DNA from: Lepidodermella squamata | Taxonomy: Eukaryota; Animalia; Gastrotricha | DNA length: 64,000 nt | NCBI GenBank assembly: GCA_047495785.1 | Contig: JBLDXI010000031.1 | Span: forward strand, 558,001-622,000 | Direction of reading: 5' to 3' | Shown here: positions 18,588 to 64,000 of the stretch, piece by piece | How positions within the stretch are numbered: the stretch's first letter is position 1 | Layout: every line of letters begins with the position of its first letter | Program-made: the position numbers and the translations under genes | The notes under the pieces: generated by a model | The model's input: only the letters and a program-made list of their open reading frames with translations | Told to the model about the DNA's origin: nothing | The model's database searches: none

Positions 18588-18822
18588 TTTGCTAATTGCG
18601 GCTAAAATGTGTATTTTGAGGCGTGTTTGCGCTGCAGACCGAGCGATTAAGCTGGACGCCACTCGTTGTGTTTATTCGTCAATATTGTGACAACAACGCT
18701 TAGCGAGCTACCGGAGCTCAAGTGAGGATTAACCACTCCATTAACATAAGCCTATACATCGCGCAGTGATTAGTTAGCAAATAATTGAGTAATAACACGG
18801 TTTTTTGCGTAGTTTTTGTGTC

Positions 18823-28468: not shown

Positions 28469-29521
28469 TCAGCATCCAGTAACCTCCATTTCAGCCGCCG
28501 AAGGTCGGCGCGCCGGACAATCTCTCGAACTTGCGAGATGCCCGCCGCCACAGTTGCAGCAGCGAACAACCCGCATGCAGAACTTCACGTTGTGCTGACG
28601 GCCACACCTTAGACATCGCTCTTCGTTCAGACAATCCCGCGCCAGATGGCCGAAATTCTGGCAACGGTAGCACTGGACCACATCAGGGGCCTTGATCACA
28701 AAGGGACGAAAACGTAACAAGAACGGCTTCAAGGCGAAGCCGTCCTTCAGACATCGCTCAGCCAAGTCGAAGTCGCTTAGTTCCAGTAACAATTGCTTGC
28801 CTCGCAGTTCAGTAACCTTGATCAGCTTGTCGCCAAATGCTTTCTTCAATTGCTCCTCAGAAATAGCATTGCTATCGAAGTTTCTTAAGACGATCCGGTG
28901 TTTCTTCTTTACCGGCTCTAGGACTTGAACTCCGTCCATCTTAGCCAAATTCTTCAATTTATCTGCTCCTTCGCTCGAGTCGAGGCGAATTTGCATACCA
29001 GTTGCTGTCTTTCTACAGCTCTTGATGTTCGCTTCCGGTACGGCCGATACGATCTGTGACCACAGAACTTTCTTGTCGCAATCGGGCTTAACATTAACAA
29101 TAACAGTCGCATCGTTAGATCGCTTAATCGGGGCTGGTTTCTTAGCCGGCTTCGAAGTCATTTGAATTTCTGGTACAGTCTCAGTTGCCTTGCTCGCATA
29201 ACCAACTTGATGCTGGGTTTGCGTACCAATCTCTTCCGTTGTTGGCTTGTCGTCGTCGTCGTATTCGGGGTCGTTCATAGAATAAACTTGCCCTCGTAGA
29301 TCCATTGCCTTCAGCATAAGAACCACAACATCCATTGCAGCAGGGTGCGCCAGGTTCACAAAGAGTTCTTCAATAATGCGGAAGATTCCACGCAGCGTTT
29401 GGTTAGACAGCATTAAGAACTGGCGTTGTTGCACTTCAGAGAACTTGGCGAACAGCTCGCTAGCATTTGGAAAATCTAGCCCAAATCCTCGCTTTTTGGC
29501 AACAGCTAGTGGTGACGCCAT
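28469..29521 (-). CDS. Gag/ORF1-like triple zinc-knuckle protein, copy a
   Basis: CYRCQNFGHLARDC, CLRCGRQHNVKFC, CCNCGGGHLASSRDC; clear paralog of 26936-27955; AATAAA downstream at 28158-28163. Confidence 0.8.
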   Translation of the reverse strand: MASPLAVAKKRGFGLDFPNASELFAKFSEVQQRQFLMLSNQTLRGIFRIIEELFVNLAHPAAMDVVVLMLKAMDLRGQVYSMNDPEYDDDDKPTTEEIGTQTQHQVGYASKATETVPEIQMTSKPAKKPAPIKRSNDATVIVNVKPDCDKKVLWSQIVSAVPEANIKSCRKTATGMQIRLDSSEGADKLKNLAKMDGVQVLEPVKKKHRIVLRNFDSNAISEEQLKKAFGDKLIKVTELRGKQLLLELSDFDLAERCLKDGFALKPFLLRFRPFVIKAPDVVQCYRCQNFGHLARDCLNEERCLRCGRQHNVKFCMRVVRCCNCGGGHLASSRDCPARRPSAAEMEVTGC

Positions 29522-42716: not shown

Positions 42717-45400
42717 ATGTCTCCATTTTACTATCCTTTGATTCCCTTCTTGTTGTTATCTTCTGCGGGTTGCTTTGTACCAAAGGCATTGTCTTTGAAT
42801 AAAACTGAAATAACTCATTATGCATGCTGCAATTACTCGTATTTAAGCAACGCTATTTTTAGATCGCTTCGTCAAAGAAGCCAGTTCTGAGTTCAACAAA
42901 AGTTGACGTGACACTTCCGAATTTCTGGTTTTATTACGTTGAAGTTATTTAGCATTTCCAGCGCGAAGCTGTTAAAGCTTCAGTAGAGTACTTCCCTATC
43001 AATGGAAAATACCGCTGGCTTGATGCAAACGCAGCTTGCATGAATAACAATGCTCATTTAGCTGAATTTGCTGATCAAAACGAGCTGCAACTTGCCGTTA
43101 TATCCATTGGGAGCTCAGAAGAGAAATTTTGGGTCGGCCGCCTATATTGCAATTCCTAACAAGTGCGGCAGTTTCGCTGGCTCGATGGCTCAGATTATCT
43201 AGAAAATTTCTTCTCCATTCTGACCCGTCTGACCCTTCGAAGAAACCGCATGGTAATTTTTTTTTGTGGGGCGATATCGAAGAGGTCAGACGGGTCAGAA
43301 TGGAGAAGAAATTTTCTTGATAATCTGAGCCATCGAGCTCTAGCTGCATCGGAATGTGACGACGAGCTCCTGAATGTTCTCTGTGAAATAAGGTCGGAAA
43401 AGCTGCGAAAAATTCCACATATACCTTTACCCGCACATCTGTAAGTCCCACCTAGAAAATTGTATTTATTTAAATATAGCATTCGCTCAAAAAATTTAGT
43501 CAGTACCCATGCTCGTGCGATATTTTACGATATAGCACTCGTAATTCATTCATATCTAGAATGATACTCTCGAGCTCGAGCACTCGATTTGGTCAAGTCG
43601 ACTCGGCTCCGCCTCGTCAACATGCCCGCATCTCGTGCTACGAAACTCAGATAAAATAAAATACTCGTACTATATCATACAAATAAATGTTCTCCAAAAT
43701 ATAGGTCGAGTAGCTTGGCCAATTCGATATTTTACGGTATAACATTCGCTAATCGTTTATATCTGAACTCGCCGCACTCGATTTACTCATCTCAACTCGC
43801 CTCTCCATTCGTAAATCTCGGTCGGCTCCGTTCAGAAATGAACTCTTTACTCATGTTATACCATACAATTATATAAATATCTATTTCATCAAACTTTAGT
43901 GAAGAAAATGGGGGAAAAGGCGGAATTTTTGAATTTTTACCCTTGACTTTTCTAGGTGGGATTTACAAATGTGCTCTTTACTCGAGTTTGCTGGAATTAT
44001 GCTATTCGCAATCGGCATATATCTCATTGCTACAACAGCTTTCCTGTTATGTGCCAAGAAAAGCAAGCCAAAGGTAGCTAATGATCTTGGTAACAAATCG
44101 GATTATTTTCTATGTTTCCTCATAGTATAATGATTTCATAATTACAATGGACCGTGTTAAAATATCAAACAAGTTAATTGGCAGAGGAGCCTTTGGACGA
44201 GTATATCTAGGAACTGTTCTGCTGAAGGATGGCAAAATTATGAAAAATGTGGCGATCAAAGTACTAAGGGAAAATGCAACCGACACTCAGCGAGAGAAGT
44301 TTCAGAAGGAAATAAACATAATGATACAGATGAACTTGACTTGCGGGAAGCATGAGCATGTGATTTCGATGATCGCATGTGTTCAACCTGGCCGTCTCAA
44401 GAATGAGATGGCAATTATTATGGAACATTGCCGATACGGTTCCTTGGACAAGTTATTGACTTGGATGGATAGGGTGCGTCGTAGGAAACCCGATATTTTG
44501 GCTGATAATTTGAAGAAAAATCAGAAAAGCAGCGCTTCCGATGCTGGCTATGTGTTTGAAACACGAGGAACACGGCTATATCTTTATGAGCCGATTCCTG
44601 AGCAGATTGCAATACTGTCGACATCAGCTAACAGTAGTTATGTGACTTCTTATGCGTTGAGCCCCATTCCAGAGGAAAGTCTGACAGCCACAGATTCCGG
44701 TTCCGGTTACGTGGTTGCAACGGGAAGGCTAAGACATCTTGAACCGTTTTTGGAGCTAATTCCGCTTCTATCAACTTCGGCAGACACCAGTTTCCCCTCG
44801 ACCCAGGGTTCCGTTAACAGAATCGACAGATTAGAAGCATTGCTTCTCCTGTACGCTGAGCAAATCAGCCGAGGAATGGAATACCTTGCCAAGCATTGCT
44901 TTGTTCACCGAGATTTAGCAGCAAGAAATATTCTCGTTTCTCGTCTCGATTGCGTTAAAATTGCGGACTTCGGCCTTAGTAGAGATTTATATTTCAACAA
45001 AATATACACTTCAACTCACAAGGATCGGGTTCCTATCAGATGGCTTGCCCCAGAGTCTTTGGAAACCAATAAATTCAGCACAGCGAGTGACGTGTATGTT
45101 AATGAAATGTGAATCTCCTCCTTGTTATTATTCAAAACTGTTGTATCTAGTTGGTCATTCGGAGTGTTGCTATGGGAAATCGCGACTTTAGGCTCGAAGC
45201 CTTATGGTTACTATAATTGCGACATTTTGCAATTTTTGAAGGATGGGAATCGTCTCGAGAAAAAAACAGATTGTTACTGCTCTGATGAACTGTATGCAAT
45301 AATGATGAAGTGCTGGAGTTACAACCCACGTGATAGGCCTTCCTTCACTAGTTTAGTTCGACAATTAGCCGGGCTTAGAACTGAAATCCAGTCAGAATAA
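42717..45400 (+). pseudogene. C-type-lectin receptor tyrosine kinase with damaged ectodomain (signal exon from about 42717; CTLD 42962-43440; TM 43956-44073; kinase 44126-45093 and 45151-45400)
   Basis: CTLD motifs RWLDANAAC..AHLA, FWVG, FRWLDG, VLCE with in-frame TAA at 43157-43159; TM FAGIMLFAIGIYLIATTAFLLC followed by AKK; kinase GRGAFG, VAIK, HRDLAARN, DFG, PIRWLAPE, SDVWSFG all intact. Confidence 0.8.
43464..43875. repeat. Two tandem related repeat elements in the RTK intron
   Basis: Repeated cgatattttacg.tata.ca.tcg, cactcgattt, ctcgcct/ctcggctccg and atacaa.ta motifs in two units of about 200 bp; class unknown. Confidence 0.5.
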
Positions 45401-45679: not shown

Positions 45680-48133
45680 CTATTGTCCTTTGATGTAGAA
45701 GGACAGTTCGTTACCAGCCGGTGACAGTTCGCAACCAGGTGAGCGCAGAACGCAAGTCATGGCCTCGCTGTTGTAGTTGAAGCCGTAACAGTTCGGGCTA
45801 TCAGTGCACAAGAACATGCAGTCCAACAACTTCTCGCCAGAGCCAATAGGAGTGCTGGTTCCGCCAGCGCAACGCTGCTTCTCCTTGATTACAAAGTTGG
45901 CCGTAGTCCTCGTACTGCCTCCAGCTTAAAGCAGGCGCAAAACGGTATTATTCAAAATCTAAGAATGTTATGAGAAATCTTCTTACCTGGTTTCAGAGTG
46001 GTTGCAGAGGGAGCAGGCGCCATAGTTGCTGGTGGTGGTCTAGGGGCTGCGGGTTCAGAAAGGGGATACGGATTAGGTCCTCCAGCTGGTGGGGCGTTGG
46101 GGGCACCGGGTGGTGGTGGCGGTGAGTCTCTAGCCGCAGCGAGACGGCTTTCAATGTAGTACCAAGATGAGCTGTCTTGGCTCCTTTCAGCGCATTTCCA
46201 CATAACAAGGCTGCAAGAGTCATCGGCCTGGTTGTAGTTGAAGCCAACGCAGCCGGCCTGATCAGTGCAAGCGACCATGCATTGATTCTTAGTGTTGATC
46301 CTAGTCATGCCAGGGATTGGATTCCTCACTTGGCACGAAATTCCGGTCTTGATCAAGAAATACGCGGTGGTTGAGCTGCCAGAGGGAGCAGGCGCCCTAG
46401 TCGCAGGAGCCACAGTTGCTGGTGCCATCTGTTGTTGTTGTTGGTCCGCCTGTGACTTCCTGTGGAATGTAACTCCGTTTTCGGTCGTCTCAGTGCAACC
46501 AGACCTAGCAACGCAAGATCCATCCCCGTTAACATTGACGCCAAGGCACGCTGGGTCAGCATCACAAAAGACTTTACACTCAGCAAGGGCAGAAGCAGGA
46601 ACTCCGACCCTGCTACCACCCCCGCAACGTTTTTCATTGACGATGACATAGCCAGACGAGGGAGCCGGGCGAGGCATTGGTGGCCCAACTGGTCCAGGGC
46701 CTGCGGGGCTTGGGCCTGGTGCTGGGCGAGGCATTGGTGGTCCAACTGGCCCAGGCCCAGCAGGGCTTGGGCCTGGGGCTGGGCCAGTTCTTCGCTCAGG
46801 AATGTAGTAGAAGGACACGTCATCGCTTGCAGCAGAGAACTCTTGGCATGGTCCAAGCGACAAAGTGCATGTATCTGTCGATTTCACGTAGAGGAAGCCC
46901 TGACACTGCTTGTTATCCGTGCAAATGAACATGCAGTTGTTGAGGGTCTTGGCCGAATTCGGACCTTGGGTAGCTGGAATGAGGCAATCAGTGCTTGCCC
47001 GGATTCTGAATGTTGCGGTGGTCACTGTAACTGGGGGTGCAACTGTCGTGCCGGCAGCAAGTGGGGCAGCACTAGGCAACGGAGGGCTGGTTTTCGCCTT
47101 TTTACGCTGGTAAGTCGTTCCCGGTTCGGTTGCTTCTGTGCAGCCAGCTCTAGCGACGCAGGAACCATCGCCGTTGACATTGATGCCGAGACAAGTGGCA
47201 TCGGCATCGCAAAATGTTTTGCATTCCGCGAAAGTAGAGGCGGGGGTGCCAACTCTTGATCCACCGCCGCAACGAGTGTCGCTAACAATCACGTAGCTGA
47301 TCGCGTTATCCGAGGCAGGTGGAGGCCTGGGAGCTGGTGGCATCGAGGGAGGGATTACATTGGGTCCTCCGGCTGGCGGGGCGTTCGGGGCACCTGGTGG
47401 TGGTGGCGGTGGGTCTCTAGCCGCAGCGAGACGGCTTTCGATGTAGTACCAAGACGAGCCGTCCTGGTTCCTCTCAGCGCATTTCCACATGATAAGACTG
47501 CAAGAATCATCAGCCTGGTTGTAGTTGAACCCAACACAGCTTGGCTGATCGGTGCAAGCGACCATGCACTGATTCTTCGTCTTGATGTAAGTTGCTCCGA
47601 GGATCGCAGCCTGCACCTGGCAAGTTTTGCCATCCTTGATAAGGAAATAGGCGGTAGTAGCGGTGTTAGGCATTGATGGAGCCTTCGTCGGGGCGGGTTG
47701 CGGGGCTCCGATCGGAGCAGCTCGTTTGCGGTAGTAAATCGCCCCAGGATCTCCGGACGTAGTGCAGCCGGAGCGAGCTGCACAGGTACCATCGCTGTTC
47801 ACGTTGTAGCCGAGGCAGGCTGGCGAGGCATCGCAGAAAGCTTTGCATTCATCACCGCTAGCAACAGTCCCGACTCGATCTCCTCCACTGCATCGCTGGC
47901 CGGTGAGTTGTTCATAGCTAGACTGGGCGGCTGAAAGATGAAATTAGGCTATTTATCAATATTTAGAAAGGGTAGAAACCAAGCTTTTTGCTTAATTGCA
48001 TTTCAAGTACTTTTCATTTTTAGGGTTGATTTAAATTTGCTGAAATTCTACAAAACTTGTGATCGGAATGAAATGTATTACCTGCAAGCAGAAGGTGCCC
48101 TGCTAGAACGGCGCCTAAAAGTAATTTTGTCAT
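45680..48133 (-). CDS. Secreted PAN/Apple-like repeat protein C (7 modules, Pro-rich linkers; exons 48133-48082, 47930-45987, 45924-45680)
   Basis: Signal exon MTKLLLGAVLAGHLLLA; phase-1 introns; last exon RCAGGTSTPIG..DCMFLC..NCYGFNY..TCVLRSPGC. Confidence 0.85.
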
Positions 48134-48385
48134 AGTTTTTCGAGATGGAAAAAACGCGAACTGACGACTCGCCGTCGCAGAATCTCCTTCTGTTTCACCG
48201 GCATTTTTTCATGCTGCCGACCCACATGGCGTATCAATCAAGCCTTAGGCTATTTACATCACTGTTATTAGTGGCGAGCGTGCGTAGTTTTTCTTCTCTC
48301 ATCTTTATTCTTACGAGTCAAGTGAAGGCTTATGTTATTAATGAAAAAAGCAAAAAAACTTTGTTATTCTCTCCGGTGTTAAGCG

Positions 48386-50629
48386 CTAGCCACTGCGTTT
48401 TATCTTGTAGAATGACGTTGAGGCAAAATTTGACTCAAAACAGCCGCGAGAACGCAACTGACAGTCCTGAGCCGATTCGCCGAAATTGAAGCCGTAGCAC
48501 CGCGTGTCAGCAATACACCTATCCTGGCACGTTTCGAGCCCAGAAAATGTGGCCAGTACGATGCTGAACCCTTCGACACACCTCTTATTAGCCACTTTAA
48601 CAAAACTCGCAGATGTCGACGCCGTAGTCGGCCGAGTTGTAGTCCTCATCGCAGGGATAAGGTCTATTTCAATAAGAGGAGGCTCAGGAATATCAGCTGG
48701 TGAAGCTTTGATGTAAACAACGAATACAGAACTCTCATCCTCAACACAGCCAGCAGATCTCATGCCACAGGTGTTATCTTTCGTGCTCAAATTGATGTAA
48801 GCACAATCAGGATTTCGCATGCAGATCGCCTTACACATTTGAAGGCTGTTTTGAACCTCATCGACCTTACTAGACCTCCCACCAGCACAACGTGTGTTCG
48901 TTTTGATCAAATAACCATCTTCAAATGAAATCGATGGGATTAAACGCTTTGGTGTCGTTGTGGTAGTTTGAGTAACTCTGTTAGTTGATGACCGGATCGT
49001 AGGGTTCCATTCTGTAGCAGCAGTAATAATTCGAGTTCTCATGGTAGTGGTTAAGGTGGCTGTAGGTCTGGGCCTTTCAGATGTTGTAGTGGTGGTTGAA
49101 GTAATAGGTCTTGAAGTCGATGGTTCTGTTTTCGTAGTGGTCGAACCAGCCCTGGTTGTAGTCGTAACTGTTGTTGGAGATGTTTCAGAGGTTCTGTTAG
49201 AGTAGGTCAGAGCCTTTTTCCTATAGAGTAGAGCTCCATCAGTATCAGCCTCGATCTTACAAGACGTTGTTCTCATAACGCAGGATCTCAGTTGAGGATA
49301 TACGGTAAAACCCTGGCACATTGGGTTCAGGTCACAGATCTGAGCGCATTGAATTGTGACCCTCTGAGGGATGTTGATCTGGGTTGAGACATCGCCATTG
49401 CACGCGAAATTCGAGGCAACTCGATACGCGGGTAGAACAATACTTTCCTCCCATTTGATTTGGCTGACCAATGGATCTTGAAAGCTCATTTCGGATTTAA
49501 CAGTTGTAATCCTCGTTGGCCTTTCAGTTGTAGATGGGGTAGTCGTGGATGGTGAGTTATTCTGAGACTTCTTCCTGTAAAGAGTTGTGCCATTTTGGTC
49601 ACTGATAATGCATCCCAAGCTTATGGCAACACAAAGCCTTGTATCTCGCCTCCAATTGAATCCAAAGCAGTTTGATCGAGATTCGCAATAGTCGACACAC
49701 TGGCCAAGGTTCATGCTAGGACCTATGGCCTCACTAGAACCATTAGCGCAAATTTTGCCGAGATTGACCTCGTAATTGTTGATAACTTCACCAAAATCGC
49801 GCCTTGTTGTTGAAGTTGCAGTGGGCTCAAAAGGCTTCGCGTAGAAAGCGTAGCGGAAATCTTGCTCGAAACTGCAACCGGCTGTGACTAAAGTACATTG
49901 CTGAGTGTTAACGTTGAGATTATAGCCGACGCAGGTATCTTCCTCGTCGCAGAGGGATGAGCATAGCTGGCGAGAACTCAGTTCTTCGCCTATTTTCTTT
50001 GTTGATAACTCCGCGCATTTGAGGTTGCTTTGAAGGAGGTAGATTCCTTTCCCATTAAAAACAGAGTCCGTTGGTTCACTGGGCTGCTGAGCCGTTCTCG
50101 GAGGCAGGGTGTTGGTGGACGATGGTGTAGTAAGTCGTGACGTGGTCCTAGTTCGAATTGTTGTTGAAATTCCGGCTGTCGTAGTTGGAGAGTTAGTCGT
50201 GGCAGGTGTTTTCGTTGTAGTTATTGTAGAGGGACGAACAGTAACAGGCGAGTTTGTAGTTCTCGCAGTTACATTAGAGCCAAGTGTGGTTGGCCTCTTG
50301 TAGAAATCGACCTCTGGATTGGTCTCGAAAATGCATCCAACCGAGCGTATCGCGCAATTTGTCTGCAAGGTATCCGCCCTTTGCGACCAGTTGAAGCCAA
50401 AGCAATCCGGGCTTTTGTTACACAAGTCCACACATTCATCAAATTTGCTCAAATTGGGCCCAATTTTTGTACTGGTCCCGCCGAAACATCGCTTCCTGGA
50501 CATGAGTTCATACTCAGGTGTTTGACATTTCGCTGGAAATTTTTCAGAAATTCTGTGATCTCTATTTGTAATTGTTCAATTTTTACCTGTAGCGAGGAAG
50601 ACAAGAGTTAAGGTTAAGAATCGCGCCAT
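48386..50629 (-). CDS. Secreted PAN/Apple-like repeat mucin D (6 modules; exons 50629-50587, 50532-48386)
   Basis: Signal MARFLTLTLVFLAT; phase-1 intron; T-rich linkers. Confidence 0.85.
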
Positions 50630-50897
50630 ATTTCCTGGTTTGAAGTGTTATTAACTGGCTAAACATGGTGTTTCAGCTGGCGCAGGTGAGCGGGAGATAA
50701 TGAGTGGCGTAGGACAGGTCATAAAACAAAGGCTCCCTCAACCTATGCTCCCGTCAGCCTTCAATCCATTTGACCATCACGTATCAGAGCAAAAAAGTCG
50801 TCAAGAAGCGTCAAGAATTAGTAAATCAGTTTATTTATTCACCGTTATACATGGATTAAACGTCAAGTCTGAGGTATTAAGAGGTGATGACTATCAT

Positions 50898-53800
50898 TTA
50901 ATTTGCGCCAGGCCTTCTTATACGGTAGAAGATCATGCTTTGTTTAGCTGGGCTGGTTACGCATCCAGCACTCCTAAGGCCACATTCCTCTGTTACAGTC
51001 GAGTAATTGAAGCCGTAACAGTCATCGTTGTATATACAGGCATTTCGGCAGGATTCGATACCTTTGGTCATAGTAAGCAACTCGCCTGTACCATCTACAC
51101 AACGGGTCGCATAGAATTCGTCAAACCTTACGACGTCATCGCTCACAGGAGGCCTCGTCCTTCTCAAGCGGCCAGGGCCCCTTCGAATCGGCGGGTTCGA
51201 TGTAGTAGTCGTGGTAGTTGTAGTAGTCGGAGTCCTTTGAATAATCGATTTCGGCTTTACGTATGAATTGTACAAGTTGGTGCTTTCTTCCGTACAGCTT
51301 GAAGTTCGCATAACGCACAACCCATTTACCTTGTTAACATTAACAACGTAACATTCTGGTGTCACGGCGCATTGAGACTTGCAGCTCTCGGCATCGGATA
51401 GGATATCCCCGATTCTATCTCCCTTTCCGCCATTACAACGGGAATCGGGCTTGAAAGTGTACACGGAATCGAACATAGAGGGGGCTGTGGTAGTTGTGGA
51501 GGTCGTCCTTGTCCTTCGAAGCCGAGTTTGAGGAGCTTCTGTGGTCAAAGTAGTAGTGGTTGGGGTAGTAGTGGTTGTAGTAGGAATTGTGGTTGTAGTA
51601 GTAGTTGATGGTCGTCTTGTTGTGGAAGTTGTGGTCCTTCTCGTTGTGGTAGTTGGAGGTAGCGTAGTTGTAGTCGTGGTCGTAGTTGTTGGAGGTAATG
51701 TAGTTGTAGTTGTGGTTGTAGTAGTGGTAGTTGTTGTTCTCGGTTTTGGGGATGGTTTCACAGTAGTTGTGGTCGTAGTCGTAGCTTCAGTGGTAGAAGT
51801 TGAAGTTACACTGTCATAGTCATACTCAGACAATGGCGCGTAAGTCGACAGCATTGTCCTCGTTGTAGTAGTAGTAGTAGTAGTAGTAGTTCTTGTCGTT
51901 GGTTTTGTTGATGGTTTCACAGTAGTTGGAGTCGTTGTCGTAGCATCAGTTGTAGATGTTGAAGTACTGTCATAGTCATACTCAGAGAACGGTGCGTAAG
52001 TCGACAAAACTGTCACCAAATCCAAACGCTCATCTTTTGTCTTGGAAATGACATCCATAGCAACAGAAGATCTCCAAGATTTCGAGGTCTTCTCGTACCA
52101 AATTGTCGAAGCATCCTGTTCCAAGACACAACCACTTGTTCTCGCAATGCATTGTCTATCTCTCGATCTCCAGTTAATTCCAAAACAATCGCTAGATTTA
52201 TCGCAAACCGAGAAACATTTGTCCAAATCGTCGATCACATCCCCAATTCTTGAGCTGGTTCCACCGATACAAGTGGTGCTAGGCTTACGGCTGTAAGTCG
52301 CAGCTTCATCAATTTCGTTCTGAGACGTCGTAGTCTTCATTCCTTTCGATAGCGTACGATTCGGCCTGAGGTAGAATGAGGACAGCCCGAACCGCTCGAG
52401 TTGGCAGTCTGATGTTGCGTAACACCCACCCTCGACTGCATCCCAATTGTAACCAACACATTCCGGATATCTCTCGCAATCCTTCGTGCAATTTTCCTCC
52501 GTATTATGTGGCGAGCCCAAAAATTCTCCTCCAATGCAAATCATACCGAATTTGAGCTCGTAATCAACAACCGGAGCAAAAGTTGGCGCCGGGGTTGTTG
52601 TGGTAGAAAGTTGCTGTACCACCTCGGTTTCATTGTAAGTCTCAGAGGCGTTGTTAGTTCTGACCAGCAGAATCGAAGTGAGGTCGGCGGATAACTTGCA
52701 GCCAAAGGAACGAGCCGTGCATTGGTTCAACATCGGAACCCAATTAATGCCGTAACAATCGCGAGTTTGCTCGCAAATTTCCTTACAACGCGTGAGATTT
52801 GTCTGAGTTTCGTCGATACTTGCGCCGATTCCTCCGAAACATTTGAGTCTAAGGTATGTCTGGTAGCCGAACTGTGGTTTAGGCGGTAGTGTTGGCGCAG
52901 CGGTTGTAGTCCAAGGATCGATAGTTTGATTTTCTTTACCAGGTTTGATGTATAAAACGTAATCTTCCATGCCATCGAATAAGGTACAGTCCCGAGTCAT
53001 AGCTTGACAACGGGAAGAATCTAAATGCCAGTTGAAGCCGATACAGTCACTTCTTGCGTTGCAGATATCAATGCATTCATTCACGCTGACTTGATAGTCG
53101 AAAATACGTCGAGATTGACCACCGGTGCACCGAACTGCAAGTTGAAGAGTGTAGTCCCTTACGATGGTTGTAACAATTTTTCTCCTTCCGACAACAACAG
53201 TTTCGTTCGTAAAGTTTGGTAGAGATGTTGTCATAGCTGTTGTGGTAGGTATTGCGGTTGTTGTAGCATTTGTCGCCGGAAGTTTCAATGGCACAATGGT
53301 TCGAAAACTCTGAGTAGTATTCACAAAGGTCATAGCTTTCTTCCTGTAGAGAAGAGCTCCATCATTTGAGCTTTCCTCGATCGTACAGTTGACCCTTCGA
53401 ACAATGCACTGCCGGGATCGAGGGTAGACAGTGAAGCCTTGGCAAACTCCAGCGGGTTGACTTTCACAAATTTCTGCGCATTGCATTGTATTTCTTTGCG
53501 TGGCGCCAATTTGAGTTGATAGATCCCCATTGCAGGCCCAGTTGTTAGCTACTCGATAGTTAGGAAGGACAACGCTAGATCCCCAATTGATGCGACTGAC
53601 GATCAAATCCTGTGGTGATAACTGGTTGATCATTTCGGAATTATCACCCTTCTTCTTGTAGAAAATCGAAGAATAATCTCGAACTTCCTCACAACCAGCG
53701 AGTACGGCAACGCAAGTTCCTAATGATTGAAGCCAGTTATATCCAATGCAGTCCATCCTCGTATCGCAAATATTTCTGCAGTATTCAGGCGAAGATCCCG

Positions 53801-54855
53801 AGTCCAATTTAGTATTCGCATCCGTAACACATTTCTTCCCAACAACCGCCATGTAAGGTGAAGGTTCAGGCGTCATTTCGAGCAAATCATCGACTTTCAG
53901 TGTCGTGCTAACTGTTGTTGTCGACACGTAAATTTGCGCAATTTTTCGATGAAAAGCCATCCCGTTCTCTTGGAAAATCGTGCAACCTTTAGTTACTGGG
54001 ATACATTGGCCGTCGCTTAGATCCAAATTAATCCCGAAGCAGTCGATATTTGGCTCGCAAACTTCGATGCATTTATCTAAATTCGGTTGAATATCGCCAA
54101 TAGCTCGCGAATCCCCACCATCGCACCTCAGCCCAAGATTTGTTTGATAATTCAACCTCGGGTCGATTTTTTTGGTGGTAGTAGTCGGAGTTGTCATTTG
54201 AAGTATCTTCGACAAAACTTCAGGCCGGCGGTAGAAAACGTATTTCGGATTCTCTTCCAGGACGCAAACTCCAGATATTGCGACGCAGTGCGAGTTGGCC
54301 AAATGCCAGTTGAAGCCGTAACAGTTCACCAGGGAGTTGCAGTAATTCCGGCAGTCATCAACGGAATCCTTGAGATCACCCGTTTTCTTGCTAGTACCAT
54401 TCGAGCATCGGTAACCAAGTTTCCGCTCGTACTTCATCTCGCTTTGGGTAAGATTCGCGTTGTTTAACGAATTCCATTGAATTAAAATCTCCGGTGCTTC
54501 CTCGTCTTGACCCTCCTGGAATAAAGGCTCAGGGTCTTCCTGTTTTCGGAAGAAGATGAATTCGTTGTTGTTGCGGACTTCGCAGCCGATTGATCGAGCA
54601 ACACATTCGCCTATTTCAGGCTGGTAGTTGTAGCCACAACAAATAGGGGAATTTTCGCAAATTTCCCGACATTGCTCCAGAGAGCTTTGAATACCGCCAA
54701 TAGCTTCACCACCACCGCTACATCGCCGGTTAAATTCTTGGATGAACTCTAACGATAGGGCTGGACCTGAAAAAAAAATTTTTAACGGGTAAATATGTTT
54801 TCCGGGACAGTTTACCTATCGATATTGAGATTAAAGCAAGCCGTAGTAGAATCAT
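50898..54855 (-). CDS. Secreted PAN/Apple-like repeat mucin E (11 modules, about 1300 aa; exons 54855-54816, 54766-50898)
   Basis: Signal exon; frame open from 54766 into ORF 54437; long poly-Thr mucin tract. Confidence 0.85.
51480..52010 (-). repeat. Coding (ACN)n Thr-rich low-complexity tract with duplicated LSTYAP(F/L)SEYDYDS unit
   Basis: (gta/gtt/gtg)n on the plus strand; pure (gta)n at about 51866-51889. Confidence 0.85.
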
Positions 54856-55155
54856 TTTTATCTTTTTTGAAATCACGAGCAAGCTGTCATAAACAATGTG
54901 GCACCAATGCTTCAGCGTAAGTCATTAAACCTGTCATATCTTAACACGAAACTTGGCATCGGCACGGCTGTAATCGCTGTCATCTCTAACCTGCCAAAAA
55001 CAACAACGATTATAAAGTCATGAAAAGCTGCGAGATGATGGTCATTAGCGATGGCTTTATTATCGCGATCATTAACGAGTGTCAGATTACGCGGCTCAGA
55101 ACACGAGTTTTTTGCCAAGAAGCTGTCACCAACGACAAGGCGTGATTTATTGCAC

Positions 55156-57724
55156 CTAGCTGCGATTAATCTTGTAGAACATCAAGCCGGTGGTGCCGGT
55201 GTACATTTCGCAGCCAGCGGAGCGTAATCCGCACTCCTCTGACCCGGCGGCCATGTTGAAGCCGTAGCAAAGTGCGGTAGCCACGCACTGGGCTGAGCAA
55301 GCCGCGAGACCCTGGTTTCGCCCAACCAACCGGCTTGTACCCCCTGCGCACCGTGACTCGACATAAGCTGTGAAATTGCCTATAGGCTTCCGCTCCGCAT
55401 CAAAATCTTCGACGTTAGAGCCAATATTAGGTCTCGAGTTCAACTGAATGGCCTAATCAAAAGTAACAAAGGTTAAAAGATGGGCAAAATACGACATTTC
55501 TCCCGGTTTAGTAGGAAAGTTCAATTTTGAACAGCTCATAACTAATCAGAATACTTACCTTCATATATACGTCAAAGTCTTTGCTAGGTACCTCCTCGCA
55601 GCCGAAAGTCCGCATGGAACAGGATTGATTCGCCGTTCTCACATTTACCGCATAACACCTCGGGTTCTCGAAACAGGCATGCCTACACTCCACAGGATCG
55701 ACGACTGCCGAAATTATCTTCTTTGAAGTCCCCGCAGCACATACAACATTCCGCTTCAGAATGAACCTGGGTCCCATTGCCGCGGTTGAAGTAGCAAATG
55801 GTACAGAGCTCGAGGTTTTGGCTTTGGTAAAACCATTCCTTGTACGCTGCTCAAATTTTGTAGAAGCAAAAGGTTTTCCCACTGTAACTGCTTGCGTTGA
55901 AAGTTCGACAGCTTGAGGCTCCGGTTTAATCATAGATTTCACTCGATATAGCAAAGCCCCCTCTCTGCTCGCTTCGATGGTACAGTCCGCAGTTCTCACA
56001 ACGCAGAACCTTTTCGCTGGATACACCGTGAATCCTTGGCAGACCCCAGGAAACTGCCGATCACATACATCCGCGCATTCCAGCGTATTCCTCCTCGGAA
56101 CGCCAATTTGAGTCGCTGATTCGCCGTTGCAAGCGTAACCTGTTGCCACCCGGTAGTGGGGAAGTACAATACTCTCCTGCCAGTTAATTTTAGCGATAAT
56201 TGGGTCGAATTGCCTTATTGATTGCTTCTGCGGCTCTGGGTTGACCAATTTCTTGTAGAAGACTGAATAAGGATCGTTCTCCTCAGCGCAACCTATCGAA
56301 CGAGCTGAGCAAACACTTTCTATTTGATTCCATTGGAAACCAACGCAGTCGAGCCGAGAGTTGCATAAGGCTAGACAGAACATCGTACTAGTCCCTGAAT
56401 CTCCAATTTTCCCGCCAGAACATTTCTTCCCAGTAATAGCCGAGTAGCTGAGGGCCTTCTTCGGCAAAGGAGTTGTAGTTGCTTCAGTTTGACCATCCTC
56501 TGAGAATGGTGTGACTGCTCCGTAATTATGACTGACTTTCCGAAATAAAACCGTTTGCGCCTCTTCAGTTACGAAACACCCTTTCGTCTTAGCGACGCAA
56601 ATGTTTGACGTGGAATTCCAATTTACGCCGAAGCAATCTTGCCGAGATTCGCAGATGTTGATGCAAACCATGAAGTCAGTCTGATTTTGCCCGATAGATC
56701 GACCATTCCCGCCGTAGCAATGAAGACCTGTTAACCGGTGGTAATTCTTAAGAGGATCCGACCATTCCTGCCTCGTCGAGATTATAGGCTCATCTGTTGA
56801 GATCGCCATATCAATGTTAGGGGATGGAATTTCTTCAGGTCTACGGTAGTGAATATAAGCGGAATCTTCATCGAGGTCGCAGCTAACAGATACAGCCCAG
56901 CAAGTCCGTTTCTCAGTGTTCCAATTAACGCCAAAACAATCAGCTCTTGAATTGCATTTTTCAAAGCAATCCCGCAAATGTCCAGATTCTAAGAAATTTT
57001 CAGAGTTGCCCTTCGAGCAGCGGAATCCTTTCACAGCCTTGTAACTTTGACCAAAAGTTGCGATTGCTTTTTCCACTTCGATTTCATATTCAGGTCTTGG
57101 AGTCGATGGCCTCAGTATGTGAACAGGCTCTTCAGTTTGTCTTGTATAATCCTCTGTTGATTTGGGTTTCCGGTAAAACACCGCACTTTCTCTGAATCCC
57201 ATTTCACAGCCTGCGGCTTTAGTAACGCAAGTGTGAGTATCAAGGCTCCAATTCACACCGGCACAGTTCTTATCCTCATCGCATTGGTCAATACAGATTG
57301 ACAGAGCTTCTTGAGGTGCTTCGCTGTTTCCTCCATTACAATGAACTCCTTCGATCAGTATGTACTTCATAGGCTCAGGTGTTGTAGTACTAGGTTTTCG
57401 GTACAGAATGAAATCGCCGTCGGTTAAAATATCGCAGCCATAAGTTCGAGCGGTGCATTCGCCCGTGTCGTAGTTCATGTTAACTCCAACGCATGATGGA
57501 TTGTTTTCACAGATGGCGAGGCACTTGTTTAGGTCATTCGCCTTCTCGCCAACCAGTTGGCTCATGCCCTCGATACATTCGCTCCCAGATTCACTTTGGC
57601 ACCCTAAAACAATCAAAATTAGCTATGAAATGATTTGGAAAATTCGGGAATATTTAAAAGAAATTAATCTTCACTCACCCACTCCTGTGAAGCATCCAAG
57701 CCAAATAATGAGTGCAAGGCGCAT
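55156..57724 (-). CDS. Secreted PAN/Apple-like repeat protein F (8 modules; exons 57724-57679, 57603-55559, 55452-55156)
   Basis: Signal MRLALIIWLGCFTGV; GT-AG introns join ORFs 55508-57616 and 55156-55443. Confidence 0.85.
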
Positions 57725-57907
57725 GTTGAAGTAAATGATACTCCTGCCAGTTCACATTGCTTGCAGATTCAAATCTAAGCTCAATGTTACAAACTCGTAA
57801 TGACACAATGCCCGGTAGTTATGCAAAACAATACTCTTTTTTATTCCGTTCCTCTTCTATAGCCTTTACTCATGATACTATCATTACAAAACAATACGAG
57901 CCTTAAG

Positions 57908-59613
57908 TTATGTTGTTCGCTTTACGTAAAAAGTAGTTTTAACCGTGTCTAAATTGGTATACATAACACAGCCGGTAGTTCGAAGGGCACATTCCTCACT
58001 ATCCCGGAGAAAGTTAAACCCGTAGCACTTTGAATTTCCAAGACAAGTCCTCGCACAATCTTGGAAGGTTTGCAACACTGCAATTGCTTTACTCGAACCT
58101 CCAGTGCATCGCGTACCTACTTTTTCGATAAAACGACTCGCATAGTTAAACGAAGCCCCAGCTGCTACGATTTCAGGCGAACTCTCGACAAATACAGTTA
58201 AAGGAGTTGTAGTAACTTTGAAATCTTGTTTACGGTAAAATGCGAAATATTGATCCGAAGCCTGTTCGCAGCCAGCAGTTCTAAGAGCACATATGCCATC
58301 GGTCAACTGAAGATTGAACCCGATGCAAGATTCTTCGGATAAGCAGAAATACGAGCAAATATCAACATCGGTTTGTATGTCGCCGATAGGCACTGAAGAG
58401 CCGCCGAAGCATTTCGTCCCTGAAACTAGGTCAAATTTCGAAATTTCACGGGCTGTAACCATCGACGCAAGTTTAGATGTAGTTGTATCCCAGATCGAAG
58501 TCACGGGAAAGGTTTCTTCGTTATCATCATCGTTAGAAGGGGCTGCTTCTGGATTTTGAAGATTCGGCAACTTTTTGAATGTCAGAGCCCCGCTCTTTTC
58601 AGCAATCAGCTTACATCTCTTGTTACGAACAACGCAATTTCTAGTCGTAGGAAACCAAGAGAACCCGAAACAGTCGTATCTAAGGTTGCAAACCTTCGCG
58701 CAGAATGTGAGATTGCCTTCCTTCGATTCGCCTATCCAGCTTATCGGGTCGTCGCTACAAGACACCCGTAATTTGGCGACGTAATTCGGGAATAATATGC
58801 TTTTCTCCCAAATATCATCTATCGGCTCGATAAATTTATCCTGAAGAGCGGCGTAAATATTTGGATTTGGCTTGACTTTCGTCGATTGAGTTAAAGTTTT
58901 TGATGTAGGTGGTATTGATTGAGCTGTTTTTCGATAAACTAAGCTCAACTCATCTGGAACCATAATGCAGCCGTGTTTTCTAAGAATGCAAAGCTGCTGA
59001 TGTTCGATCCAATTAAAACCGAAACATTCGGCATTTTCGTCGCAGATTTTCATGCAGGTCTCAAAATCTTGCTCAGCCTTACCAATTCTATTATCCGGCC
59101 CACCAGAACATCTCATAGCAGTCTCCACTATATAATTCGGATGAATTTGGTCCAACTCAGGCTTTGCGTGGAATAGCCCTTGGTCGTTCAAAATGGTTGG
59201 TACGACCTTGCGGTAGAAGACCGAGCCGTGAGATGCAGTTACCAAACAACCGATGGTCATTGCCAGGCATGATTCATCACTACGGCGCCAGTTGAAGCCA
59301 GCACAGTCGTGGCGAATGTCGCATAGAGCAGCGCATTGCCGGGCCGAACGTTGCGATTTTCCAATCACGCGGCTTGTTCCACCAGTGCATCGACGATCCT
59401 GAAAGGGGCGGTAGTTGCTTGGAGATCGATAATCCTCATAAGAGTCTGTCTGCGAAACTGAAAAATACCAAAAATGAGATTGACCTAAATGACAATGCAA
59501 GGCTATATCTGATTTTGAAATTGAATTTTTTGAAATTGTGAAATTTAGATTATTGGAGTTTTACCTGATAATTGCACCAAGGTGATTGTAAGGGAGAGTG
59601 CTAACAAGATCAT
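57908..59613 (-). CDS. Secreted PAN/Apple-like repeat protein G (5 modules; exons 59613-59565, 59457-57908)
   Basis: Signal MILLALSLTITLVQLS; phase-1 intron. Confidence 0.85.
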
Positions 59614-59929
59614 ACTCAAACTGGCTGTTCAATAAACGTTTGAAATTGCGGCGTAAATGTACGGCCAGGTGTGCAAAACAAACAGGCGGGCCATTTTGGT
59701 GCGCAGCTGGCCAGTCATTCTGCCCACAAATAGTTATTACTTATCACAGCACACCATGTTATTTGCAGAAAAAAGTCGCCACAAAGACCTGCCAATTATT
59801 TGTTTACATGAACGCCAAGAGTAAACCAAAGAAAAGCCTGGAAAAATACCGCAACTCAAATTTATTTTTCTTGAACTTTGAAAATAGAAATATCCTAAAA
59901 TAATGAAAGCGATTGGCTGAAATCAGTTT

Positions 59930-62473
59930 TCATCTACGAAGTCTGTAGAAAGCCATACCAGGACTTGTTCCTATTTCGCAGCCGTTAGACCTTAGTCCAC
60001 AATTTTCGTTTTCCAGAATGAAATTGAAGCCGTAACAGTCGGAGTTGTCTTCACAAGCTGCTTTACACTCTTCGAGACCAGTATTTCGTCCAAGGGATAC
60101 GCTTCGTCCACCAGAGCAATTTGAAAATTCAATCAACTCCCATTTATCACGCTTCCTAGGCGTGGTGTTAGTCGCGATTTTCTTGTAGAACGAGAATTGA
60201 TCATTCGGCTGCTCGATGCAGCCTGAAGTCCTTAATCCACAAGTTTTCGCTTCGTTATGGAAATTAAAGCCGTAACAGTCCGGATTCTCCATGCATAAGG
60301 AAGAACAAGCTGCGAGACCATTTTGCCCCTCTCCTAGTCGAGTCGAAGCGCCAACTAAGCACGAAGTTCCTGGTCTTAAATCAAATCCATCCTGAGGTAA
60401 TGGCGCTTCAGGGATAGCTAAATTCCGTTTAGGATCCATGGCAGAGATATAAGTATCTGCTTCATTGGTTTTCCGGCGATAAAAAAGGGCTCCATCAGCT
60501 CTCTGAAGGACACAAGTCGTGTTCCTAACGATACACTCTCCGCGCCAGGGTAGATAGGTATAGCCGAAACATCCATCTATAGAGCTACATAAGGCCATGC
60601 AAAGTTTGGTAGAAGATCTAGGAGGCCCTATTCTCGACGCAGTGTCATTACTACAGCCACGATTCGGTACTACAACATAACGAGGCTCGACTGAAATTAC
60701 GTAACGGGGCGTTGAAGTCTTGAGAGTGGACATTACTGTGGTTGTAGGGTCTTGCCGTTTGATATATATCTCAGAGCTGCTATCGAGTTCCGTTGTACAA
60801 GCTGATGTGCTTAGGACACAGGTGCCCTCAGAAGGTCGCCAAGTCACCACAGCACAGTCTTCTCGGGACCAACAATTCGACTTACACTGGTTTAGGTCTC
60901 TGAGGATTGGGCCTATTTTTGTGTAAGCATCACCTAGACACCTCATTTTTGTATTTAAAAGGAACGCATTTTCAGGTATGGGCGAAATAGAGGTAGTGCT
61001 TGTAGTGCTCATTTCCATTGCAAGAGATTGAGACATTTTCCGGTAGAGAATAGCCCCTTCTTCCTGCTCAAGGCTACAGTCCTTAGTCCTGAGAAGGCAA
61101 TTTCCAGAACCAGACCGCCAGATTATTGCGAAGCAGTCATCTCTAGAGCTACAAATCGATCTGCACTTATCCAGATCATTAAGAGTTTCGCCTATTTTGG
61201 AGCTGGGAGGTCCGTTACATCTCATTCCTTGGTCCATTCGATAATTCGAGCCCATATTCCTAATAGGATCTTGAGTTCGAGCTGTTACTGCTTGAGTCAT
61301 TGGTATGTCTGAAACTAGGCCAGTTTTTCGATATAAAACCGCAGTGTCATCTTGGTCGATTGAGCATTGCCGGGTCCTTAGAACACAAGACCTTGATTGA
61401 GCGCGCCATGTAATCGCGTAGCATTGACTATTAGCTGTACAAACTGCCCTACACTGATCGAGGTCATCTATAGTTTCTCCAATCTTACTCGAAGGATCTC
61501 CTATACATCTCATACCCTGATCCGTTCGATAATTCGAAGCTAGATTCATCACAGGACTCCTGGTTCTTGGACTCGGAGCTTCAGTCACCGGATTGTCCAT
61601 AATTAGGTCATTTTTACGGTATAAAACTGCGGTGTTATCCTGTTCGACTGAACACATCTGGGTTCTAAGGATACAGTTTCTAGCCTGGGCGCGCCATGTA
61701 ATCGCGTAACATTGGCTATTAGCCGAACAAACTGCCCTACACTGGTCAAGGTCATACAAGGTCTCACCGATTTTACTAGAAGGATCTCCGCTACATCTCA
61801 TTCCTTGCTCCATACGATAGTTCGAATTGCCGGGTCTTGCTAAAGTTACAGGGTTATCAGTAACCCAGCCTTTCTTCCTATACAAATTCGCCGAGATATC
61901 CTGCTCGACAGAACATTCCTCAGTTCGGAGGATGCAGGACTTAGGACCAGGGCGCCATGTTATAGCGTAACATTGGCTATTCGACGAACAAACTGCCTTA
62001 CACTGGTCCAAATCATTCAAGGTCTCACCGATTTTACTTGGAGGTTCACCTACACATCTCATGCCTTGCTCCATAGTGAAGTCTACGTCATTTCTAGCCG
62101 GGGTCGATGGCCTAACTAGCGATCGCAATTTTTCATAGAAAACAGACCCTGGATCATCGACTGAGGAACAACCGGTAGATCGAGAAATACATGACTTATC
62201 TTCGATTCGGAAATTGAAGCCGAAACAACTAGGCTCGGAGTTGCAGAACTTAGCGCATAAGTTCGGGTCTCCCTTTTGGATATCTCCTAAGGCTGTACTA
62301 GGGCCCCCGGTGCACCTTTTGCCTTGAGTCGCGCGGTAACCGGCTACGTTGTTTACATCCTGCGCGGTAACTAAAAAACAAAAAATACCGGGAAGCAATT
62401 ATAGTGTTTTTTTGTTGTATAACTCACCTTCCTTTAGTGCGAGAATAATAAACAAGGAAATATGCCGCATCAT
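59930..62473 (-). CDS. Secreted PAN/Apple-like repeat protein H (9 modules; exons 62473-62428, 62370-59930)
   Basis: Signal exon MMRHISLFIILAL; modules 2-5 are recent duplicates. Confidence 0.85.
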
Positions 62474-62675
62474 TTTGTTGTGTTGTTTTGTTGTCGTGTT
62501 ATTTCACGTCAAACGACGTTCATGCACCAAACAAAAGCACTTGTAAATGACTTTACGCAAAAATATGCACCGAGAGCAGATTCACTTCACTTTATTGTTG
62601 TAAAAAGAACAAAATACATTATTATAAGCTCAAAATTTGAGATAGAAGCGCGTGGGTTGTGGGTGGTTTCTGTTT

Positions 62676-63107
62676 TCAAGAGGGCCGGACGATTTTGTAG
62701 AAAATTAAACCGGTCGCTGTTGCTTCGACGCAGCCGAAGGTTCGAATGGCGCAAACCTGCGTCAGGGTGATGTAATTGAAGCCGTAGCACGTCTCATCGT
62801 CCGAGCACATCTTCTTGCACGTATCCAGGCCTGAAGCGATGCCGAGAGATTGACTCGTCCCGCCTGCACATCGAATTTCGGCGAGAGGGGTGAAGTTCAC
62901 GCCCGCTGTCGCTGTAGTAGTAGTAGTGGCTGGTGTTTGATTATTTACGAGCAAAGCTGGATTTGATGTTCGTGGAGTAGTCGTGGTCGTGGTTGTTGTT
63001 GAGGTCCAAGTGGTGACAGCACTCGCTGCTTTTAAGAAGAATACGAAAAGATCGTCAGCGTATTCGTCGCATCCAGTTGACCTCAAGGTACAGCTACCAT
63101 CAGAAAG
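62676..63107 (-). CDS. Last exon of PAN/Apple-like repeat gene I (upstream exons not located, probably beyond the window)
   Basis: Acceptor ttctccag then LSDGSCTLRSTGC, Thr linker, and terminal RCAGGTS..CYGFNY..CAIRTFGC module. Confidence 0.75.
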   Translation of the reverse strand, partial: LSDGSCTLRSTGCDEYADDLFVFFLKAASAVTTWTSTTTTTTTTPRTSNPALLVNNQTPATTTTTATAGVNFTPLAEIRCAGGTSQSLGIASGLDTCKKMCSDDETCYGFNYITLTQVCAIRTFGCVEATATGLIFYKIVRPS

Positions 63108-64000
63108 CTGGAGAAAAAGAGAAATTCAGATACATTATACATTCAAGGCAGAATTGATGAGGGCTTTATTCGAGATATCTTCTTTCCTACAAATAGCGAA
63201 ACCCCGATTTCCCTTTGTCAGGAATCGTGATATGTAAATATTTAGGAGTGGGTTGGACTCACAGAGAGCAATAACTCGAAAAACTCCCTGCCTTTCCTCT
63301 AAATTTCGATTTTCAATCAGGATTTTTGTGGAACCGCAGAAGACGCGAAATCGGGGTTTCGCGGTTCTTACTTGTTATCTTTATCTTTATTCAGGGGGAA
63401 TCTACGAAATAGATATTTAATTTTTAAAATAAAGAATGAGTGACACCATAAATTGTCAGAGACAAAAAACGTATCGTTGAAAATTCGACACGAGCCAGTT
63501 CCAAGGCCCAAAAGTCTTTCACACGTATCCTTATTGCTAGAGGGTTTTATTGCTATTATTCCTATTGGGTATGCTTTATTTTTATGAAGGCATTCTTAAA
63601 TTGCATGTATTAACCTAACAATGTAGACGCCATGTCTGTTTAGCCTGTGAAACTCATAAATTGGGGAGGAAAAACGATAGAAATCCTACATTTAATCCAC
63701 CTTGAAAAAGATTATCAATGGAACGGCCCACTTTGATTACTAATTACGTTTATTATTGAGCCATTATTTCTTACCAGGGACAGAAATAACCGAATATTAG
63801 TTATTATTAAGGAGCACTACTCTTTAATGGTTTTCGAGCTTTTTATCAATTAATTGCTTAATTCACGACTCTGATGACTTCAATTCAACTAAAATTTTCA
63901 GTTGGTAAAACCAAATCAGGTAAAATAAAAGAAGGAATAAAATGGTATCCCAATTTCAGAAATACCAAATCTCGGAAGTACGGAAGGTATTCAAGGCAAA

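Follow-up and report, generated by a model that had tools for sequence, protein, structure and literature searches.

The 64-kb stretch of the Lepidodermella squamata genome analyzed here (the window; contig C31:558001-622000, within a searched genome of 121.2 Mb and 151 contigs) carries a tandem array of old, intact paralogous genes for secreted chains of PAN domains that probably dock to, or cross-link, an extracellular matrix. The genes are designated g1 to g8 in the main array, with g7 and g8 extending past the window end, and gA and gB in a second, smaller cluster. New with respect to the first-pass annotation of this DNA is the observation that paralogs share a module order and that, in the main subfamily, each gene has a single module capped by an extra helix (the Q-type module) and a conserved terminal module.

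The repeated unit was delineated with a hidden Markov model (HMM) built from 51 regex-defined modules and scanned against all six reading frames of the window. This recovered 56 complete modules (E 5e-13 to 3e-25) and one half-module (63030-63110), all of them on the minus strand, with nine at 17.1-20.7 kb and 47 at 45.7-63.1 kb, and no further copy in the window scored below E 0.08. Long open frames of the minus strand, which reach 1305 codons in the module family, lie at both intervals, so that the clusters of seven and two genes and the total of nine genes with about 56 modules described earlier are reproduced. All six cysteines are invariant in the alignment of the 56 modules, their spacing is nearly constant (C-x15-19-C-x3-C-x5(7)-C-x10-15-C-x5-6-C), and the consensus over the module length of 65-72 aa, xxYxxxxxxRCxGGxxxxIGx8CxxxCx5CxGxNx7CxxRxxGCx9FYRK, is the same pattern that had been given in the first-pass annotation.

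By sequence and by modeled fold this module is a genuine PAN/Apple domain. Pfam PAN_1 (PF00024) was detected in seven of seven open reading frames (ORFs) at 22.2-113.6 bits (cut-off 21.4 bits), and PAN_4 exceeded its own cut-off in four of the seven. The profile of the 56 modules matched Toxoplasma MIC4 (TgMIC4; E 6.6e-8) and factor XI (FXI; E 3e-7), with further matches to prekallikrein, Sarcocystis SML-2, saratin, LAPP, plasminogen and HGF; here, as in the other homology and fold comparisons, the queries were single exons or modules rather than spliced full-length proteins. The PAN fold is an antiparallel β-sheet packed on one α-helix bearing a C-x3-C pair, and the disulfides of the Apple subtype are C1-C6, C2-C5 and C3-C4. 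Cysteines C1-C6 of the module all align with cysteines of the FXI apple domains in the profile alignment, from which we infer the same disulfide connectivity. The AlphaFold2 (AF2) model, calculated from an alignment of paralogous modules, has five strands and a helix at residues 26-35 with a predicted local distance difference test (pLDDT) score of 96.3. A Foldseek search of the PDB with this model returned PAN domains only, with a probability of 1.00 for HGF-N, plasminogen PAp, LAPP, SML-2, TgMIC4 and FXI A4, including HGF-N and plasminogen at a query-based template modeling score (TMq) of 0.73-0.78 and apple-5 of TgMIC4 (70 aa) at a target-based score (TMt) of 0.75 and a root-mean-square deviation of 1.8 A, while the ESM Atlas returned only generic PAN clusters (scores ≤0.90). 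Pfam, profile, AF2 and Foldseek comparisons therefore agree on the PAN/Apple-like nature of the module that had been proposed, and no non-PAN fold was obtained. The description of the module as miniature does not hold as a special feature, since at 65-72 aa it is the same size as TgMIC4 apple-5.

The genes have the organization expected of intact secreted proteins (Table 1). Signal exons that end in phase 1 are seen in all of g1-g7, as had been noted, and in g1-g6 they are followed by GT..AG introns of 49-151 nt; those of g6, g5 and g2 were read base by base and the others by script. The signal exon of gA (~58 nt) was deduced from its ORF translation, which reads through a GTAAGT donor. Canonical GT..AG introns also connect the short last exons to g1 and g4, and the exon at 18826-19134 is probably the last exon of gB, with a fifth, terminal-type module that shares 52% identity with the final module of g1. 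The signal peptides predicted for the proteins are of typical form, no other segment of the proteins is sufficiently hydrophobic to span a membrane, and Pfam found no family other than PAN in the ORFs, which bears out the claim that transmembrane and catalytic domains are lacking. In five of the seven genes, signal cleavage is predicted to expose a Gln (possibly converted to pyroglutamate) as the N-terminal residue, immediately ahead of the first module. At the other end, the proteins terminate 12-20 aa past the final Cys of the last module, and a canonical AATAAA lies 59-95 nt past the stop codon in six of six genes (g2-g7), so that each gene would have its own mRNA 3' end. The distance from stop codon to next ATG measures 183-316 nt, matching the ~180-320 bp between coding sequences reported previously, and only ~100-250 nt separate a poly(A) signal from the next start codon. 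A spliced-leader operon was considered as a reading of this tight spacing; no clear unpaired splice acceptor was seen in the sequence. The region of g1 (46001-48000) is richer in GC (56%) than its neighbors (43-46%) because of its Pro/Ala/Gly-rich linkers, the window as a whole having ~43% GC, and this richness gives rise to spurious long ORFs in other frames and on the complementary strand (for example, 46462-47259 on the plus strand).

Table 1. Features of the PAN-module genes and related loci. Positions are those of the window unless prefixed; L001 is the 50 kb that follow the window end (L001:1 = C31:622001).
Feature	Position	Strand	Description
g1	45680-48133	-	7 PAN modules, Pro-rich linkers; from ORF, HMM and splice inspection
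g1 exons	signal 48082-48133; main ~45987-47930; last 45683-45925	-	signal exon 52 nt, phase 1; introns of 151 nt after signal exon and ~60 nt before last exon
g2	48386-50629	-	6 PAN modules; signal exon 50587-50629 (43 nt, phase 1) and one large exon
g2 mucin-like linkers (two)	~50042-50293 and 48917-49213	-	33-36% Thr
g3	50898-54855	-	11 PAN modules; single exon of ~1288 codons after signal exon
g3 signal exon	54816-54855	-	40 nt, phase 1, then 49-nt intron
g3 Thr-rich linker	~51462-52088	-	208 aa, 47% Thr
g4	55156-57724	-	8 PAN modules; signal, main and last exons
g4 exons	signal 57679-57724; last 55159-55452	-	signal exon 46 nt, phase 1; introns of 75 nt after signal exon and ~105 nt before last exon
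g5	57908-59613	-	5 PAN modules; one exon after signal exon
g5 signal exon	59565-59613	-	49 nt, phase 1, then ~105-nt intron
g6	59930-62473	-	9 PAN modules; one exon after signal exon
g6 signal exon	62428-62473	-	46 nt, phase 1, then 57-nt intron GTGAGT..TTTTAG
g7 last exon	62676-63107	-	C-terminal half of split module and terminal module
g7 5' part	C31:622001-623767 (L001:1-1767)		signal exon (ATG at L001:1767, 49 nt, phase 1) and 4.5 modules
g8 split module	L001:5074-5145 with L001:5349-5477		
gA	17133-18587	-	4 PAN modules, short-spacing subtype C-x16-C-x3-C-x5-C-x10-C-x5-C
gB	18823-20716	-	4 modules in main exon 19382-20716 and probable last exon 18826-19134
Q-type module of g3	53337-53657	-	N-terminal extension of ~20 aa, S.QD..I..I.W..S.VLP.YR
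Other Q-type modules	g2 49214-49525; g4 55940-56254; g5 58571-58882; g6 60470-60778	-	
AATAAA of g7	62591-62596	-	80 nt past stop
Other AATAAA signals	g6 59861-59866; g5 57840-57845; g4 55056-55061; g3 50834-50839; g2 48304-48309	-	
Long open frames, main cluster	45955-47943, 48389-50575, 50901-54815, 55511-57622, 57911-59560, 59933-62398, 62679-63125	-	ORF list
Long open frames, second cluster	17136-18671, 19382-20749	-	ORF list
Modules in short extra exons (n=3)	18826-19134, 45683-45925, 55159-55452	-	module HMM
Signal exons listed for N-terminal Gln	48082-48133, 50587-50629, 57679-57724, 59565-59613, 62428-62473; L001:1719-1767		
Sister arrays	C33:1.113-1.128 Mb (C33a)		5 genes, 33 modules; module search
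Sister loci	C33:1.281 Mb (C33b), C55:0.914 Mb, C31:0.494-0.500 Mb		module search
Further sister loci	contigs C12, C2, C30, C50, C16		module search

The array is not confined to the window. The gene g7, of which the window contains only the last exon, is not incomplete; it has its 5' part directly past the window end and totals six modules, one of which is split into halves at 63030-63110 and L001:96-230 by an intron of ~1 kb. Beyond it lies g8, whose 15 modules are spread over three open frames; these overlap or have a second split module in common. The split modules of g7 and g8 are interrupted at the same site, in the interval between Cys4 and Cys5 (HMM positions ~44-48), which could be an intron position inherited from an ancestor; no other module contains an intron. 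The main array ends at C31:631,463, ~9.5 kb past the window end, and comprises eight genes and 67 modules in ~28 kb, with no modules in the 40 kb that follow this end or in the 10 kb before the window. A genome-wide search with the module alignment yielded 421 candidates, and 147 of the 150 that were scored are matches, so that the family has at least 147 (up to ~420) modules on nine contigs, C31 included. Candidates for Pfam PAN_1 number more than 600 in the genome. What had been described as a system is thus one locus of a dispersed family and is not self-contained.

The modules have a conserved arrangement within the genes. A typical module is only 35-45% identical to any other module, and only g6 (modules 2-5, 60-80% identical), g8 (modules 3-5) and g1 (a two-module unit) have recent internal duplications. 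The Q-type module is present exactly once in each of the genes g2-g8, and likewise in each of the five C33a genes and in the C33b and C55 genes. It carries a conserved N-terminal extension of ~20 aa, in which W, S, P and Y are nearly invariant and which AF2 models as an extra helix (pLDDT 89) that has no counterpart among the solved PAN structures in the Foldseek search. That the Q-type module is a different fold was considered and rejected, as its core is still PAN. The last module of each gene is likewise of one conserved type, with the terminal modules grouping together, and the C55 gene and two of the C33a genes are colinear with g3 in the order g3.2-3.3-3.4-Q-3.6. A second subfamily consists of g1, gA and gB, in which the cysteine spacing is shorter and the Q-type module is missing. 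Conserved module order, a single Q-type module and a fixed terminal type together indicate that the gene of an ancestral protein with differentiated module positions was duplicated as a whole, and that the modules are not a homogenized repeat. These duplications are old and the copies are under purifying selection, because even in the closest pairs the proportion of synonymous differences (pS 0.58-0.86) is saturated, while that of nonsynonymous differences (pN) is 0.08-0.19; the full ranges are pN 0.08-0.35 against a saturated pS of 0.58-0.87, with dN/dS ≤0.25.

The same data bear on whether the array is functional at all. The probable source assembly was derived from DNA amplified by multiple displacement amplification, and 370 non-metazoan contigs were removed from it (PMC11660948), while the best named matches of the module profile include protists and algae. 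The genome searched here holds no COX1, and an intronless HSP70 gene from it had no exact match in the protein collection. An amplification artefact of assembly, a contaminant contig or a set of decaying pseudogenes is nevertheless scarcely credible as an explanation. The contig is 2.06 Mb long and bears animal-type genes beside the array (nicotinic acetylcholine receptor (nAChR)-like channels, a C-type lectin and a tyrosine kinase), modules of the same type occur on nine contigs including this one, and the copies differ far too strongly from one another to have arisen as amplification chimeras. In addition, there are no internal stops, the cysteines are invariant, and the splice and poly(A) signals are canonical.

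The array proteins appeared undescribed in the first-pass annotation, and neither full-length searches nor an exhaustive profile search have changed this, as no full-length ortholog of known function was found in any phylum. For g6 (822-aa query), the search for full-length relatives gave a single weak protist match, and the last 320 aa of g5, a query of a length that fits both full-length proteins and transcript fragments, gave none. The exhaustive search with the module profile identified 3492 proteins at E<1e-3, 35 of them at E<1e-30. Matches over the whole module are to unnamed ENA metagenome proteins with 22-36% identity to the window genes; of these, P0004 and g5 are colinear (30% identity over 518 aa, E 3e-80), and both P0004 and P0008 retain the triad of Q-type module, intervening module (X) and terminal module. 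Named proteins match in the PAN core only (profile positions ~20-57) and are all uncharacterized (Dimorphilus, Octopus, Besnoitia, Cymbomonas and Norrisiella). Judging from these similarities, P0002, P0004, P0006 and P0008 are probably true family members from related animals, and the best explanation of the pattern is a large family specific to the source animal and its close relatives. The family is absent from annotated databases and represents a known domain architecture that has expanded in one lineage.

Between the modules, the linkers consist overall of 20% Thr, 13% Pro, 9.5% Ser and 0% Cys, compared with 6% Thr within modules, and they differ considerably from gene to gene. Mucin-like stretches occur only in g2 (83 and 101 aa) and g3, those of g1 are rich in Pro, and most others are 10-45 aa long and only moderately rich in Ser, Thr and Pro (S+T+P); in g4-g6, gA and gB they range from 9 to 69 aa with 17-52% S+T+P, with the exception of one 9-aa linker of g4 (78%). 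The VWD, CysD and cystine-knot oligomerization domains of gel-forming mucins were not found in the Pfam scan. The mucin half of the lectin-mucin system that had been proposed consequently applies to the linkers of g2 and g3 and not to the short ones of most other genes.

The junctions between modules and linkers also raise the question of whether the chains stay whole. If the proteins were polyprotein precursors, proprotein convertases would cut at the basic residues that end a module (FYRK/K) and free single PAN domains, and a dibasic pair does indeed lie within 18 aa of the last Cys in 51 of 73 modules. This pair, however, is mostly R-K (32/73), falls on the last β-strand of the model and often precedes Pro, while K-R or R-R follows 18 of the 73 modules and the furin consensus R-x-K/R-R only three. 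Processing of this kind is very improbable given the rarity of the furin consensus, and the conserved module order favors a function of the intact chain.

The reading that we favor, matrix docking and cross-linking, can be put as follows. Each gene encodes a secreted, non-enzymatic, non-membrane string of beads in which 4-15 compact Apple-type PAN domains are carried on flexible, Thr/Pro-rich linkers, a few of them long and mucin-like, that may act as O-glycosylated spacers. By analogy with other PAN/Apple domains, each module could serve as a small binding unit for a glycan or a protein; the chain as a whole would in that case be multivalent and serve for docking or cross-linking in the extracellular matrix. 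The differentiated, position-specific modules are envisaged to bind different partners rather than to repeat one specificity. The most likely site, again by analogy, would be an apical matrix, either cuticle, glycocalyx or mucus, in the epidermis, pharynx or gut. Several points weigh against this proposal. The choice of a matrix site, be it cuticle, gut or egg, is a guess based on the PAN proteins of nematodes, and the type of ligand, glycan or protein, is not readable from sequence. A gel-forming role in mucus is not indicated for most of the genes, given their short and moderately S/T/P-rich linkers, and an adhesive version is unsupported, as the papers on flatworm duo-gland adhesion found by our search make no mention of PAN domains. 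Moreover, a collection of 5.8 billion proteins contained no identical or near-identical entry for g6 or g5, and the blank result with the 320-aa query of g5 means that no annotated or transcript-derived copy is present in that collection.

Of the functional alternatives, which we rank with matrix or mucus docking first, a soluble microbe-binding lectin second and a component of adhesive glands or egg shell third, the second would make the PAN chains soluble pattern-recognition lectins or agglutinins that bind glycans of microbial surfaces, either within the gut lumen or at the surface of the body, with roles in defense, prey capture or the handling of microbiota in a bacterivore rather than in a matrix. 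The nearest solved relatives of the module include the galactose-binding apple domains of TgMIC4, and SML-2 was crystallized with thio-galactose. The family is large, its many diverged modules (35-45% identity) could provide many specificities, and a C-type lectin-like ORF is located nearby at 15310-16023. We nonetheless consider this role rather unlikely, since the duplicates are old and under purifying selection and their module order is common to paralogs and to another organism, a combination that fits fixed partners better than an arms race.

The third alternative, that the chains are part of a specialized secretion, either the egg shell or the glue from the duo-gland system of the posterior adhesive tubes, appears distinctly unlikely, even though secreted, repetitive, Cys-rich multidomain proteins with glycosylatable linkers make up many invertebrate adhesives and egg coats, and tight tandem spacing, here ~100-250 nt from poly(A) signal to next ATG, is a property of some gland-specific clusters. 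The term PAN domain does not occur in the papers on temporary adhesion in flatworms that the search retrieved, the family is very large and dispersed, which is more than one would expect a small gland to require, and the genes have no upstream motif in common. Among seven upstream regions, no shared 7-mer or 8-mer rose above shuffled sequence, and a T-rich 6-mer present in five of the seven was rejected as evidence of co-regulation because it is of low complexity. The co-expression proposed in the first-pass annotation is conjectural, and this comparison speaks neither for nor against it.

A bolder extension of the matrix reading, which we regard as unlikely, is a phylum-restricted kit for matrix building. 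The fixed order of differentiated PAN modules, with its one Q-type and one terminal-type module per protein, would then encode assembly, as every position would dock a partner of its own in the construction of the elaborate gastrotrich cuticle and scales or of a temporary adhesive. If this were true, the PAN chains would be the gastrotrich counterpart of the cuticle collagens and ZP proteins of nematodes. More modestly, if matrix docking and cross-linking is the correct function, the array genes become candidates for encoding structural or binding components of the gastrotrich extracellular coat, for which our literature searches found no paper with molecular data on the extracellular matrix, cuticle or adhesive of gastrotrichs, and the conserved module order and the single helix-capped module offer handles on how multi-PAN chains work and which module docks where. 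Otherwise, a well-known extracellular domain has expanded here within one lineage and in the familiar form of a tandem array, which would not surprise a specialist, and the finding does not bear on a long-standing question.

The remainder of the window contains genes of several other kinds. Three paralogous ORFs of the plus strand (2279-2782, 9774-10322 and 14831-15286) encode small Cys-rich, Ser/Thr-rich proteins with a near-identical C-terminal half (..CNEMS.TTK...DVH..C.CCTDGCSAKPYCGLS.GST..AS....KG.CAQMRKNVDDVCTYVENSASD). The C-type lectin-like ORF (minus strand; signature WIGL..., EPSN, ..ENCV) lies between these and the first PAN genes. Two related ORFs of the minus strand (26936-27955 and 28469-29521) have terminal CCHC zinc-knuckle motifs (gag-like) and are inserted within a tandem array of genes for nAChR-like channel subunits, and a non-LTR (long terminal repeat) reverse-transcriptase ORF is found at 356-1831 (minus strand). 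Directly downstream of g1 is a tyrosine-kinase-like exon (44147-45112, plus strand) with an internally repeated, Ser/Thr-rich insert of ~110 aa between its N-lobe motifs and HRDLAARN.

Among known systems, the apicomplexan multi-Apple microneme adhesins (Toxoplasma MIC4, Eimeria MIC5 and Sarcocystis SML-2) resemble the array proteins in being secreted, in consisting only of tandem, compact six-Cys PAN/Apple domains and in having multivalent binding as their working principle. Toxoplasma MIC4, which has six apple domains, is both the best sequence match of the profile and, through apple-5, the closest small-domain structure. There is, however, no orthology, as the match is to the domain only at ~20% identity, and the adhesins have no counterpart to the module order and Q-type module of the gastrotrich proteins, whose linkers are long and Thr/Pro-rich and whose host is an animal rather than a parasite. 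Galactose binding is a feature of MIC4 and SML-2, according to their PDB titles, and the gastrotrich modules are alike at the level of the fold only. The apple domains of FXI and plasma prekallikrein and the N domains of plasminogen and HGF share the same fold with six aligned cysteines, and are protein-binding modules that occur in tandem (four in FXI). The array modules are ~20 aa shorter than the vertebrate apple domains, the array proteins lack the kringle or protease domains of plasminogen, HGF and prekallikrein/FXI (Pfam), and their linkers suggest a flexible chain in place of the compact disc of FXI.

Closer in architecture are long, uncharacterized proteins with 10-55 PAN repeats, such as DgyrCDS10690 and DgyrCDS14473 of Dimorphilus gyrociliatus, LOC118764742 of Octopus sinensis, PAN domain-containing proteins of Besnoitia and an Apple domain-containing protein of Cymbomonas, and from their presence in other eukaryotes it follows that the general architecture is widespread. 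These match in the PAN core only and are not colinear with the array genes, while the ENA metagenome proteins P0004, P0008, P0002 and P0006 match over the full module length and have 5-10 modules. The best-tested functional parallel in animals is LET-653 of C. elegans. Its PAN domains show dynamic binding to a fibrillar matrix in the lumen and adjoin an O-glycosylated region rich in Pro, Thr and Ser (PMC4970718). LET-653 and the other PAN-ZP proteins of the apical matrix (NOAH-1/2 and the Drosophila NompA type) are secreted animal glycoproteins that are docked to a luminal or cuticular matrix by their PAN domains, and like them the array proteins are secreted and combine PAN domains with stretches that are in part rich in Pro, Thr and Ser. 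They differ from the PAN-ZP proteins in having no ZP domain (PAN only in Pfam) and from the LET-653 type in having 4-15 PAN modules instead of two and no C-terminal module with furin-type cleavage. With these differences, LET-653 would be the best functional analogy for the chains encoded by the array.

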